From: Schizochytrium sp. TIO01
Taxonomy: Eukaryota; Protista; Bigyra: Labyrinthulomycetes
Direction of reading: 5' to 3'
Assembly: GCA_004764695.1 (NCBI GenBank)
Contig: SMSO01000035.1
Location: forward strand, 2,790,001 to 2,854,000
Length of the DNA: 64,000 bases
The position numbers were made by a program, and so were the translations under genes. The notes below the pieces were generated by a model, which saw only the letters and a program-made list of their open reading frames with translations, did not search any database and was not told where the DNA came from. Of this stretch, positions 47,679 through 55,625 are shown piece by piece; position 1 is the first letter of the stretch; every line of letters begins with the position of its first letter.

Positions 47679-50600
47679 ATTCAAAGAGGAAAATGAAAAC
47701 ACAACAAAGATGAAATCCTGAAAGCCAACTTAGATCACTCACGTCTATGCATGCATGCCATTATTGAATCAACTCGACAGTCTTTCTGAAAATAATATCG
47801 GCGACGAGGGCGCCAAGGCAGTGGCTGCGGCGCTGAAAGAGAACCGGTCGCTGACATCACTTGAGTAAGTTGTCTACGCAACACCGCAACTCGTGGACTA
47901 GTTTGTGCATGATGCTTGCTTTGTTGGTGTGTTGTTTTAGTCGGTGTTGTTTTGCAAGTTTATGCAATCGCTTGTTTGTTTGATGGACGGATGAATTGTC
48001 TGTTTGACTGAGTATGCATCCATCGCACAAAGAGCAAAATGACAACACAACAAAGATGAAATTCTGAAAGCCAACCTAGATCACTCACGTTCATGCATGC
48101 ATGAGTGCATCTAATGCAATGTAATGTATTGCTTGCCACCATTCAATCAAATCGACAGTCTTTCTGCGAACAAAATCGGCGACGAGGGCGCCAAGGCAGT
48201 GGCTGCGGCGCTGAAAGAGAACCGGTCGCTGACATCACTCAAGTAAGTTATCTACGCAACACCGCAGCTAGTAGACTTGTTCATACATGACGCTTGCTTT
48301 GCTGTTTGGTGGATGGCTTTGCACGGTGGGCTTTGCACGGTGTCACTTTGCAAGTTCATGCAACCTCTTGTTTGCTTGTTTGATGGACGGATGAATTGTC
48401 TGTTTGACTGAGTATGCATCCATCGCACAAAGAGCAAAATAACAACACAACAAAGATGAAATTCTGAAAGCCAACCTAGATCACTCACGTTCATGCATGC
48501 ATGAGTGCATCTAATGCAATGTAATGTATTGCTTGCCACCATTCAATCAAATCGACAGTCTTTGTGCGAACAAAATCGGCGACGAGGGCGCCAAGGCAGT
48601 GGCTGCGGCGCTGAAAGAGAACCGGTCGCTGACATCACTCAAGTAAGTTGTCTACGCAACACCGCAGCTCATGGACTTGTTTGTACATGATGCTTGCTTT
48701 GTTGGTGTATTGTTTTAGTCGGTGTTGCTTTGCAAGTTTATGCAATCGCTTGTTTGTTTGATGGACGGATGAATTGTCTGTTTGACTGAGTATGCATCCA
48801 TCGCACAAAGAGCAAAATGACAACACAACAAAGATGAAATTCTGAAAGCCAACCTAGATCACTCACGTTCATGCATGCATGAGTGCATCTAATGCAATGT
48901 AATGTATTGCTTACCATCATTCAATCAACTCGACAGTCTTTATCGGAATGATATCGACGACGAGGGCGCCAAGGCAGTGGCTGCGGCGCTGAAAGAGAAC
49001 CGGTCGCTGACATCACTGTAGTAAGTTGTCTACGCAACACCGCAGCTGATGGACTTGTTTGTCATGATGTTTGCTTTGTTGTTTGGTGGGTGGCTTTGCA
49101 CGGTGGGCTTTGCACGGTGTCACTTTGCAAGTTCATGCAACCTCTTGTTTGCTTGTTTGGTGGATGAATACGTGGCCTGTTTGACTGAGTATGCACCCAT
49201 CGAACAAACGAGCAAAATGACAACACAACAAAGATGAAATTCTGAAAGCCAACCTAGATCACTCACGTTCATGCATGCATTTAATGCAATGTAATGTACT
49301 CCTTGCCATCATTCAATGAAATGAACAGTCTTTATGGCACCCAAATCGGCGACGAGGGCGCCAAGGCAGTGGCTGCGGCGCTGAAAGAGAATCCGTCGCT
49401 GGAGTCACTATAGTAAGTTGTCTACGCAACACCGCAGCTTATGGACTTGTTTGTACATGATGCTTGCTTTGCTGTTTGGTGGATGGCTTTGCACGGTGGG
49501 CTTTGCACGGTGTCACTTTGCAAGTTCATGCAACCTCTTGTTTGCTTGTTTGATGGATGAATACGTGGCTTGTTTGACTGAGTCTGCACCCATCGAACAA
49601 ACGAGCAAAATGACAACACAACAAAGATGAAATCCTGAAAGCCAACCTAGATCACTCACGTTCATGCATGCATTTAATGTAATGTAATGTACTCCTTGCC
49701 ATCATTCAATGAAATGAACAGTCTTTATGGCACCCAAATCGGCGACGAGGGCGCCAAGGCAGTGGCTGCGGCGCTGAAAGAGAATCGGTCGCTGGAGTCA
49801 CTATAGTAAGTTGTCTACGCAACACCGCAGCTCATGGACTTGTTTGTACATGATGCTTGCTTTGCTGTTTGGTGGATGGCTTTGCACGGTGGGCTTTGCA
49901 CGGTGCCACTTTGCAAGTTCATGCAACCTCTTGTTTGCTTGTTTGGTGGATGAATACGTGGCTTGTTTGACTGAGTCTGCACCCATCGAACAAACGAGCA
50001 AAATGACAACACAACAAAGATGAAATTCTGAAAGCCAACCTAGATCACTCACGTCCATGCATGCATGCATCTGATGCACTGTATTGTACTGCTTGCCATC
50101 ATTCAATCAAATCGACAGTCTTTATAGCAACTATATCGGCTCAGAGGGCGCCAAGGCAGTGGGTGCGGCGCTGAAAGAGAACCGGTCGCTGACATCACTT
50201 GAGTAAGTTGTCTACGCAACACCGCAGCTCATGGACTTGTTTGTACGTGATGCTTGCTTTGCTGTTTGGTGGATGGCTTTGCACGGTGGGCTTTGCACGG
50301 TGTCACTTTGCAAGTTCATGCAACCTCTTGTTTGCTTGTTTGGTGGATGAATACGTGGCTTGTTTGACTGAGTCTGCACCCATCGAACAAACGAGCAAAA
50401 TGACAACACAACAAAGATGAAATTCTGAAAGCCAACCTAGATCACTCACGTCCATGCATGCATGCATCTGATGCACTGTATTGTACTGCTTGCCATCATT
50501 CAATCAAATCGACAGTCTTTATAGCAACTATATCGGCTCAGAGGGCGCCAAGGCAGTGGGTGCGGCGCTGAAAGAGAACCGGTCGCTGACATCACTTGAG

Positions 50601-53600: not shown

Positions 53601-55625
53601 TTGTTTGTTTGATGGATGGATGAGTTGTCTGTTTGACTGAGTATACATCCATTGAACAGAGAGCAAAATAACAACACAACAAAGATAAATGCTGAAAGCC
53701 AACCTAGATCACTCACGTTCATGCATGCATGCCTGCATCTATTGTAATATGTAACGTGTAATGTATTGCTTGCCATCATTCAATCAAATCAACAGTCTTT
53801 CCTACAACAAAATCGGCTCAGAGGGCGCCAAGGCAGTGGCTGCGGCGCTGAAAGAGAACCGGTCGCTGACATCACTTGAGTAAGTTGTCTACGCAACACC
53901 GCAGCTCGTGGACTTGTTTGTACATGATGCTTGCTTTGCTGTTTGGTGGGTGGGTCGGTGTTGTTTTGCAAGTTTATGCAATCGCTTGTTTGTTTGATGG
54001 ATGGATAAGTTGTATGTTTGAGTGAGTATACATCCATCGAACAAAGAGCAAAATGACAACACAACAAAGATGAATTTCTGAAGGCCATCCTAGATCACTC
54101 ACGTCCATGCATGCATGCGTGCACCTATTGTAATATGTAACGTGTAATGTATTGCTTGCCATCATTCAATCAAATCGACAGTATTTCCTACAACAAAATC
54201 GGCGACGTGGGCGCCAAGGCAGTGGCTGCGGCGCTGAAAGAGAACCGGTCGCTGACATCACTTGAGTAAGTTGTCTACGCAACACCGCAGCTCGTGGACT
54301 TGTTTGTACATGATGCTTGCTTTGTTGGTGTATTGTTTTGATCGGTGTTGTTTTGCAAGTTTATGCAATCGCTTGTTTGTTTGATGGATGGATGAGTTGT
54401 CTGTTTGACTGAGTATGCATCCATCGAACAAAGAGCAAAATGACAACACAACAAAGATGAAATTCTGAAAGCCAACCTAGATCACTCACGTCCATGCATG
54501 CATGCATCTAATGTAATGTGTAATCTGTAATGTATTGCTTACGATCATTCAATCAAATCAACAGTCTTGAAGACAACAAAATTGGCGACGAGGGCGCCAA
54601 TGCAGTGGCTACGGCGTTGAAAAAAAACCGGTCGCTGGAGTCTCTTAGGTAAGTTGTCTTAGCAACACCGCAGCTCATGGACTTGTTCGTACATGATGCT
54701 TGCTTCAGTGGTGTGTTGTTTAGCAAGTTTATGCAATCGATTGTTTGTTTGATGGATGGATAAGTTGTCTGTTTGACTGAGTATGCATCCATCGAACAAA
54801 GAACAAACTGGCAACACAACAAAGATGAAATCCTCAAATCCAGCCTAGATCACTCACGTCAATGCATGCATGTATCTAATGTAATGTGTCATGTGTAATG
54901 TATTGCTTGCCATCATTCAAATCAAATCGACAGTCTTCAAGGCAACAATATTGGCGACAAGGGCGCCAAGGCAATGGCTGCGGCGCTGAAAGTGAACTGG
55001 ACGTTGGCAGAAATAGAGTAAGTTGTCTACGCAACACCGCAGCTCACAGACGTTTTTGTACATGATCCTTGCTTTGTTGGTTGGTGGGTGGGTTGGTGTT
55101 TTTTTTGTCCAGTTTTGTTTAGCAAGTTTACTCAATTGCTTGTTCGTTTACTTCTGTTTTTGCTCTTTTGGTTGGGGTGGATCTAACAGAGAACACGACC
55201 ACATCAAAGGAGAAATGAAATTGTATTATCATTCCTTTGGGTACCTTAAATGAGGTTCAATTGTTAACTGACGAACGGAGATGATGCTATTTGGTCTGCT
55301 AATTCTTAGATTAAGATTGAGCCATGAAGGACAGAGGGAGCTGAAATTGAATGAAGATATTTATTATGCAAAGACACGAAGGACAAGTCTTGAGCAGATC
55401 TCTCGTGAGCTTGATTGTATACATGCTGTAAACAATGCACTTTCTATGCCATCTTCAGTGAAAGTCAGTCGCTTTGCACAGAGTCTGCTTGCTAGCAGTA
55501 ATAGTGAGCAGAGCTCGAAAGAGGAATTTCTTGCTACGCAGAAAGCAGAGCTTGATATATTGGAAGCTTTAATCGTTGCCTTTAGGGAGTCATTGGGATT
55601 GCTGGGCCCTTACATTTTCGAATGA
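47519..55625 (+). CDS. Gene C: spliced RI-like LRR(20) protein with a short helical C-terminal tail, about 686 aa; paralog of the gene A N-terminus
   Basis: Exon 1 is 47519-47583 (MSDHPGVVTALEKLQNGATTL). 84-nt LRR exons start at 47781, 48159, 48559, 48937, 49329, 49722, 50119, 50516, 50900, 51279, 51525, 51895, 52282, 52654, 53024, 53411, 53796, 54182, 54565, 54934. The probable last exon is 55310-55625 (branch-like GCTAAT, TTAG acceptor, phase 2). All donors are GTAAGT and no exon contains a stop. Confidence 0.85.
47606..47678 (+). repeat. (GCTT)n microsatellite in intron 1 of gene C
   Basis: Same motif and position as in gene A but much shorter. Confidence 0.95.
47680..55140 (+). repeat. 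Tandem ~370-400-bp exon+intron array C (20 LRR units), same family as array A
   Basis: Recurring catcattcaatcaaatcgacag|tctt...gagggcgccaaggcagtggctgcggcgctgaaagagaaccggtcgctgacatcactNNN|gtaagttgtct. One unit has a shortened intron (51363-51524). Confidence 0.95.

Follow-up and report, generated by a model that had tools for sequence, protein, structure and literature searches.

The question raised by this locus is how repeats whose DNA is nearly uniform from one unit to the next can differ so strongly at a handful of codons. The 64,000-nucleotide stretch analyzed here (the window) spans positions 2,790,001–2,854,000 of contig C34 of Schizochytrium sp. TIO01, whose assembly comprises 64 Mb in 37 contigs. 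It contains a gene, here called gene C, in which 20 plus-strand exons of 84 nt (C1–C20; 47781–55017) encode a row of leucine-rich repeats (LRRs). The original prediction, made from the sequence alone, had described hypervariability confined to the ligand-facing LRR codons of otherwise homogenized DNA and had proposed diversifying selection or targeted mutagenesis on a gene-conversion background. The observation is confirmed and the interpretation is partly supported: it is likely that gene C belongs to a set of homogenized LRR arrays of the ribonuclease-inhibitor (RI) type in which selection favors differing residues at the binding face.

Each 84-nt exon of gene C encodes one 28-residue RI-type LRR, and the array has AG/GT at all exon borders and no stop codons. 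The unit reads L1-x2-x3-L4-x5(split)-L6-x7-x8-N9-x10-I11-G12-x13-E-G-A-K-A-V-A-A-A-L-K-E-N-R-S; because the exon opens with the third base of the split x5 codon, all introns are in phase 2. A fuzzy search of the window with a 48-base core returned 27 plus-strand copies, seven in a second gene (gene A) and 20 in gene C, and this register, as originally proposed, fits all 27. It carries the RI-type signature LxxLxLxxNxIGdxGaxxLaxaLxxNxx, in which residues 1, 4 and 6 are Leu, residue 9 is Asn and a helix follows the Gly; relatives carry PF13516. Searched against the PDB, a single gene C exon matches RI-like, NOD2 and DRC5 LRR chains with E-values of 1e-8 to 1e-5. The residues at x7 and x8 are exactly those first read: SE, SA, CA, YR, YG, YG, YS, YS, SG, RG, WI, SG, YI, CR, SG, SN, SY, SY, ED and QG in gene C, and SW, ER, DH, RE, SR, SR and RE in gene A. 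The same is true of the codon after Asn (N/K/D/Q/Y/E) and of the split junction codon (D/N/Y/A/H/T/S).

The position of these residues on the fold was judged from an AlphaFold2 model of a Hondaea relative, P0004, built from an alignment of 32 family members, with secondary structure assigned by DSSP. P0004 has six repeats with an invariant scaffold and variable positions as in gene C, and its LRR part is modeled with a pLDDT of 91–97. Strands fall at x3-L4-x5 (residues 32–34, 60–62 and so on), in agreement with the register, while the loop that follows the strand contains x7, x8 and x10; the helix runs from G12, which places x13 in its first turn. In established LRR structures, L1, L4, L6, N9 and I11 face the core, and x5, x7 and x8 lie exposed, either on the concave face or next to it. 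The variable codons are predicted to lie on or beside the binding face, and the earlier assignment to the concave sheet and adjacent loop holds in this model for x5 (strand) and for x7, x8 and x10 (loop), but not for x13, which is helical.

Diversity was compared site by site, in gene C alone and in 216 units having both flanking introns, drawn from 21 arrays (the window and 20 other loci); a wider sample of 264 units, from the window and 20 further arrays, served for counts of codons, stops and splice sites. In gene C alone, nucleotide diversity (pi) at core codons is mostly 0–0.1, third positions included, and intron sites average 0.125 (95th percentile 0.456), so the description of a near-invariant core between similar introns was sound. 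The variable codons reach 0.67 at the first base of x5, 0.28/0.67/0.66 over the three bases of x7, 0.63/0.65/0.47 at x8, 0.69/0/0.56 at x10 and 0.52/0.56/0.62 at x13. Among the 216 units, introns have a mean pi of 0.103 and a maximum of 0.516, and scaffold sites lie at about 0.05; the corresponding values are 0.71/0.69/0.69 for x7, 0.71/0.52/0.44 for x8, 0.68/0.22/0.63 for x10, about 0.52 for x13, 0.68/0.53 for the first two bases of x5 and 0.67 for the Leu4 third base, a synonymous site. In ten exon columns pi is higher than in any intron column, which confirms hypervariability against homogenized DNA, and all ten fall in x5, x7, x8, x10, x13 or the Leu4 third base. The boundaries are sharp to the codon: pi is 0.08 at the third base of Leu6, 1 nt before x7, and 0.01–0.04 in Ile11, immediately after x10. 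At x7 alone, 40 codons encode 18 amino acids, and 163 distinct variable strings occur in the 264 units. The claim that this variability is confined to ligand-facing codons survives for x5, x7, x8 and x10; it fails for x13, in the first turn of the helix, and for the synonymous Leu4 base, and x3, itself a concave-face position, hardly varies (0.03–0.13). On the helix side of the scaffold, two other places turn over in amino-acid-changing steps only: exon column 45 (second base of Ala20) alternates between Ala and Gly, with 36–42 changes and no synonymous ones, and columns 65–66 (position 27; Arg, Gln, Trp or His) have a ratio of non-synonymous to synonymous rates (dN/dS) of about 5.

What keeps the rest of the unit alike is sequence exchange among repeats. 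Scaffold codons have a synonymous diversity of 0.073 and a non-synonymous diversity of 0.051; since the synonymous value is not above that of the introns, the core is uniform through homogenization and not through protein constraint alone. The gene-conversion background, postulated in the original prediction, is directly visible in the comparison of copies. A second copy of gene C lies on contig C8 at ~121.7–128 kb and is 99.44% identical over 6234 nt; a third, inverted and near-identical, lies on the minus strand at C34:2926764–2927922, ~84 kb from the window. The window and contig C8 copies show 35 differences, among them two places where x13 is exchanged as a whole codon (GAC/TCA), three junction-block changes and eight changes within 28 nt of one intron, typical of a short conversion tract; across 16 units, there is no difference at x7, x8 or x10. 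For 159 of the 216 units, the nearest relative of the flanking introns sits in another array, and the upstream and downstream introns share the same best neighbor in just 53. Repeats are exchanged within and between paralogous loci, as in arrays under concerted evolution.

Outside the closest pairs, variable strings and flanks are uncoupled. Identical strings are found in 15 of 16 pairs whose flanks diverge by less than 0.01 and in 4% of those at 0.01–0.03, and over all units the distance between strings is nearly uncorrelated with that between flanks (r = 0.12 upstream, 0.13 downstream). These two values show no preference for either side, and a linkage of the string to the upstream intron, with crossovers falling in the exon core, was rejected. 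Inside the exon, association decays with distance: it is strong between x7 and x8, weaker between x8 and x10 and between x10 and x13, and absent between x7 and either x13 or the junction. Two of the variable segments have a particular makeup. The x13 codon has in essence two states, Ser (TCA) and Asp (GAC), which differ in every base, and three states prevail in the junction block (T-GA, C-AA and A-TC), where the synonymous base of Leu4 is almost fully linked to x5. Both x13 and this junction block, made up of x5 and the third base of Leu4, are old blocks of two to five states that have been shuffled, not hypermutating codons.

The remaining codons are x7, x8 and x10. An 820-nt segment of gene C is duplicated on the plus strand, copy 1 (51633–52452) comprising an intron, C12, an intron, C13 and part of the next intron, and copy 2 (52762–53581) including C15 and C16. 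The copies differ at three positions of copy 1 (52287, 52290 and 52295), and all three differences change an amino acid: Y/S through the second base of x7, I/N through the second base of x8 and N/D through the first base of x10. A search of the genome found the variable strings of C13 and C16 only in gene C and its two copies, with the partial intermediates YNNN and YNND elsewhere; a donor for the three changes was sought genome-wide and none was found. As the strings occur nowhere outside the gene C copies, they are not accounted for by one conversion event with a donor that still exists. Among 14 independent pairs of close units (1–3 differences), all 22 changed codons alter the amino acid. 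In a tree built from 215 units, ~6 changes per site fall in introns and at scaffold synonymous sites, as against 55–78 in the variable codons. When only single-base changes at x7, x8 and x10 are counted, 113 are non-synonymous and 10 synonymous (dN/dS ~2.4); synonymous single steps amount to ~6.4 per synonymous site there, compared with 6.2 in introns and 5.8 at scaffold synonymous sites. No stop codon is seen at x7, x8 or x10, where base frequencies would lead one to expect ~40. The residues at these positions are 89–96% polar or aromatic (Tyr, Trp, Ser, Gly, Arg, Asp, Asn, Gln, Glu, His, Lys and Thr), and aliphatic residues make up 2–6%, against 28% expected under uniform codon use.

Several observations weigh against selection as the cause. 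The dN/dS of the variable codons over all changes is just 1.0–1.3, by Nei-Gojobori diversity and by tree counting, and x8, at ~2 (p = 0.0003–0.001), is the sole codon to reach significance; because both classes of change are near saturation, the overall value of ~1 was not used as evidence for selection. Of 323 codon changes on the tree, 200 are multi-base replacements; instead of substitutions, these may reflect short conversions or loci that do not fit the tree. Adjacent to the split codon, the Leu4 third base, although synonymous, varies like the hypervariable sites (0.64–0.67), and synonymous third-base diversity inside x7 is 0.38, well over background. Exposure, finally, was judged through the secondary structure of a member of the family of a 45%-identical relative and not on gene C itself. 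Diversifying selection is nevertheless the reading that best fits the duplicate, the single-step ratio and the residue classes, whereas the classical test over all changes does not support it; to that extent the earlier proposal holds.

A ratio near 1 for all changes, a synonymous Leu4 base that matches the selected sites in variability, differences between the strings of close units that are bimodal (0 or at least 3) and the few-state blocks at x5 and x13 would equally suit codons under no positive selection at all, namely, old positions tolerant of polar residues that escape homogenization because conversion tracts end there or mismatch repair restores them. This alternative is unlikely. Mere tolerance does not predict the 113-to-10 excess while synonymous changes run at the neutral level, nor a duplicate that has acquired three amino-acid changes only, giving strings without a donor elsewhere in the genome, nor 22 of 22 recent codon changes altering the residue. 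The flanks, moreover, are homogenized to within 1 nt of the variable segment, at the Leu6 third base and at Ile11; since this is so on both sides, conversion tracts do cross it. A mechanism, germline or somatic, that mutates just these codons would in turn account for the extremely sharp boundaries, for a per-site change about ten times that of the introns and for the presence of all four bases as common states at x7 and at the first base of x8. Such targeted mutagenesis, the other cause put forward originally, is disfavored, and we hold it to be very unlikely: the 99.4% identical copies of gene C, which differ at 0.4% of intron sites, show no difference at x7, x8 or x10 in 16 units, where a 20-fold rate would give ~8–12, which speaks against a mutation rate steadily raised 10- to 20-fold at these codons; synonymous single steps in the variable codons, in turn, proceed at the intron rate. 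Contigs from independent DNA runs carry identical strings with no other letters, for instance over C9 and C19, and neither a template repeat nor a known eukaryotic mechanism acting with codon precision was seen.

It is barely conceivable that the array is not a gene, that is, a non-coding spacer satellite with fortuitous codons, or that its variation is an assembly artifact, even though repeats of 366–529 bp at such chromosomal positions have been published as spacers without database similarity (10.1101/2023.06.15.545109). In the 264 units, 7,128 codons contain no in-frame stop, AG and GT stand exactly at the predicted borders in all 264, and the phase is 2 throughout. Single exons match RI-like LRR chains, the array of gene A runs in frame into Roc-COR-TIR domains, and the same architecture recurs in annotated Hondaea proteins and in a transcript-derived Aurantiochytrium protein. 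Contigs spliced precisely where the borders were predicted, furthermore, come solely from one sequencing run, X15, whose RNA type is a guess. One X15 contig joins C19 to C20 (54646/8 to 54932/4) and position 55017 to 55310 across GT..AG, and many others are intron-less junctions of paralogous units; these joints are absent from the contigs of three DNA runs. The runs consist of short contigs, 70–80% of those placed fit two sites in the window and rare variants are dropped, so splice joints and a few zero-difference pieces are what can be used from them. At x7/x8 of C20, run contigs have two other letters (54938 and 54942), maybe from paralogues.

Gene C, which is expressed and spliced, belongs to a large family of thraustochytrid genes. 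Its first exon (47519–47584, plus strand), read from the sequence, consists of ATG, 21 codons and two bases, encodes an N-terminal cap reading MSDHPGVVTALEKLQNGATTL and ends at a GTAAGT donor; the N-terminus resembles that of a transcript-derived protein, P0017, and the DNA around the start (46910–47681) and the upstream region of gene A are 85% identical. The phase-2 introns measure 285–316 nt (about 300), apart from one of 162 nt after C10 (51363–51524), an internal deletion in an otherwise regular array. The last coding exon (55310–55625, plus strand), placed by the X15 joint and by frame, encodes a 105-residue tail with the stop ending at 55625; a Pfam search of the tail gave no match, and gene C lacks Roc-COR and ends in this domain-free tail. 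Over the tail exon and its intron (55047–55646), contigs of all three DNA runs mismatch the window at ~10 places; the runs either assembled a 97%-similar copy or derive from a slightly different strain. The first introns of both genes contain a (GCTT)n/(TGCT)n microsatellite, with 50 copies in gene A (17619–17819) and 18.5 in gene C (47605–47678).

Three processes probably shape the arrays. Unequal crossing-over duplicates LRR units, gene conversion within and between chromosome ends holds scaffold codons and introns near-identical, and selection for differing residues would maintain and renew the differences at x5, x7, x8 and x10. Of these, x5 is the last strand residue, on the concave face, and x7, x8 and x10 lie in the loop that follows; x13, Ser or Asp in the first turn of the helix, and the junction block are moved about by short conversion tracts. 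Selected differences at these four positions would produce a solenoid with a long recognition surface that changes unit by unit. In sister genes such arrays are fused to a kinase (gene B) or to Roc-COR-TIR (gene A), so that the family has the look of a set of sensors encoded in the germline, with a putative role in ligand binding and immunity.

Binding-face hypervariability on homogenized LRR exons has counterparts in candidate immune receptors of brown algae and, on other repeats, of fungi; it is unreported in thraustochytrids. The closest published system is that of the brown-algal LRR-ROCO genes of Ectocarpus and Saccharina, in which each 72-nt exon between phase-2 introns encodes one 24-residue LRR, exons are duplicated and shuffled, and four concave positions, x3, x5, x7 and x8, are variable or under selection (Zambounis et al. 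2012, PMC3341825; Teng et al. 2024, PMC11378527). Both systems belong to stramenopiles and share one LRR per symmetric exon, phase-2 introns, exon duplication and shuffling, four variable positions per repeat, the LRR-Roc-COR order and a proposed function as immune receptors. The thraustochytrid exons differ in their 84-nt length and 28-residue RI-type repeat, in an intron that splits the x5 codon inside the strand, where the algal intron follows NxLx, and in a variable set of x5, x7, x8 and x10 (plus x13) that omits x3. Their introns are homogenized (pi 0.10), TIR follows COR or a kinase is the partner, the arrays lie beside subtelomeric rRNA genes and the host is unicellular. As for site-specific selection of the algal kind, which may act here, tree counting gives a dN/dS of ~2.4 for single steps, ~2 at x8 and 1.0–1.3 for all changes.

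Fungal NLRs carry WD, ANK or TPR repeats that are highly conserved internally and hypervariable at binding-surface positions (Paoletti 2007, cited in Dyrka et al. 2014; Dyrka et al. 2014, PMC4986451). As in gene C, the repeats are almost identical in DNA sequence, evolve in concert both within a gene and among paralogues and have a few hypervariable positions on the binding surface. In contrast to those of the thraustochytrid family, they are not LRRs, of which fungal NLRs yielded none, and are encoded in a single exon with no intron per repeat; the central domain is NACHT or NB-ARC, not Roc-COR. The LRRs of RI and NLRC proteins (Pfam LRR_6; NOD2, PDB 5IRM) resemble those of gene C in the 28-residue repeat, the strand, the Asn ladder and the helix. 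In vertebrate NOD1, NOD2 and NLRC3, each LRR likewise occupies one 84-nt exon; these vertebrate repeats, however, lack both near-identity and the contrast of hypervariable and invariant sites within one gene, and have other partner domains. Lamprey variable lymphocyte receptors (VLRs) also combine variable concave-face residues with an invariant scaffold in cassette-like units, but VLRs are built somatically from flanking cassettes, whereas nothing points to somatic change in the thraustochytrid: gene copies and independent runs share strings. Templated diversification, as in VLRs or diversity-generating retroelements (DGRs), is not apparent here: the genome holds no donor for the C13 and C16 strings, and the 99.4% identical copies have no differences at x7, x8 or x10.

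The arrays are widespread and terminal. Tandem Repeats Finder detects three long-period arrays in the window, at 17889–20389 (period 385), 42793–45403 (period 422) and ~48.7–55.1 kb (periods 370–393), and a conserved 45-mer of the core, allowed up to 3 mismatches, has at least 955 matches in the genome, mostly near contig ends beside rRNA genes; the reversed 45-mer, searched as a control, has none. In Aurantiochytrium limacinum, almost every chromosome end has repeats called LORE-TEARS, with units of 366–529 bp present in 1.8–22.6 copies, between 5S, 18S-28S and the telomere; they were described as non-coding spacers that may help to maintain the chromosome ends (10.1101/2023.06.15.545109). 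The window arrays have similar periods (370–422 bp) and lie between a minus-strand 5S and a plus-strand 18S, and they are likely LORE-TEARS, the probable identity of organism and repeat being based on the published description; they differ in reading as exon-intron arrays of expressed genes. If this is correct, anonymous chromosome-end spacers would be the largest candidate family of recognition-protein genes in a thraustochytrid, and the scheme in which each exon encodes one repeat and an invariant scaffold bears a variable face would extend beyond multicellular brown algae to a relative that is unicellular, can be cultured and transformed, and hosts persistent giant-virus-like elements. Because homogenized introns provide an internal neutral yardstick, rare in such families, the balance of conversion and selection becomes directly measurable, and the Roc-COR-TIR partners suggest a testable signaling output. 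A more far-reaching idea, which we think distinctly improbable, is that the chromosome ends serve as a recombination workshop for a receptor repertoire, with ~1000 LRR exons by subtelomeric rRNA genes swapping sequence in the manner of var or VSG genes, and with exon skipping through symmetric exons or rare mitotic conversion creating cell-to-cell differences in binding surface. Were it true, it would amount to an adaptive-like recognition system in a unicellular heterotroph carrying persistent mirusviruses.

The two sister genes of the window show the partners to which such arrays are joined. Gene A, of the same LRR family as gene C by core search and register, has seven 84-nt LRR exons (18020–20418, plus strand) followed by a large exon encoding Roc GTPase, COR-A and TIR domains (20509–23088, plus strand; the coordinates are those of the open frame, not of a splice acceptor). 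Pfam matches in this frame are Roc (3e-16), COR-A (3.8e-12) and TIR_2 (6.3e-12), with COR directly after Roc, which is the ROCO architecture (LRR-Roc-COR). Among named proteins, those nearest to the Roc-COR-TIR part are LRR_6-Roc-COR-TIR proteins of Hondaea fermentalgiana (42–45% identity), with further relatives in transcriptomes of Aurantiochytrium and Aplanochytrium, which marks the organism as a thraustochytrid. Gene B, on the minus strand, has seven exons of a second LRR family (42793–45420), each of 84 nt, starting T CTT, in phase 2 and within a 422-bp unit; its repeats vary at x7, x8, x13 and the junction, a design as in gene C. Downstream of this array, a kinase open frame occupies 39323–42100 on the minus strand (Pfam Pkinase, 2.1e-28).

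Genes A and C share one layout, with a minus-strand 5S rRNA gene upstream and an 18S unit downstream, all located with Rfam. The 5S gene at 46935–47053 (minus strand) is divergent from gene C, which is followed by an 18S-5.8S-28S unit from 58670 (plus strand); gene A has a 5S gene upstream at 16952–17070 (minus strand) and an 18S downstream at 24982 (plus strand). Minus-strand 5S genes number three (16952, 37754 and 46935), the two 18S-5.8S-28S units (24236–30312 and 57924–64000) are 97.5% identical, and the window holds more than one complete super-unit of rDNA and LRR array. Elsewhere in the window, a cluster of four tRNA genes stands beside a low-GC stretch (0.345) with A/T-rich tandem repeats (31401–32492; 32000–36000), and a large plus-strand open frame at 255–3302 encodes UvrD-type helicase domains with a weak F-box match.

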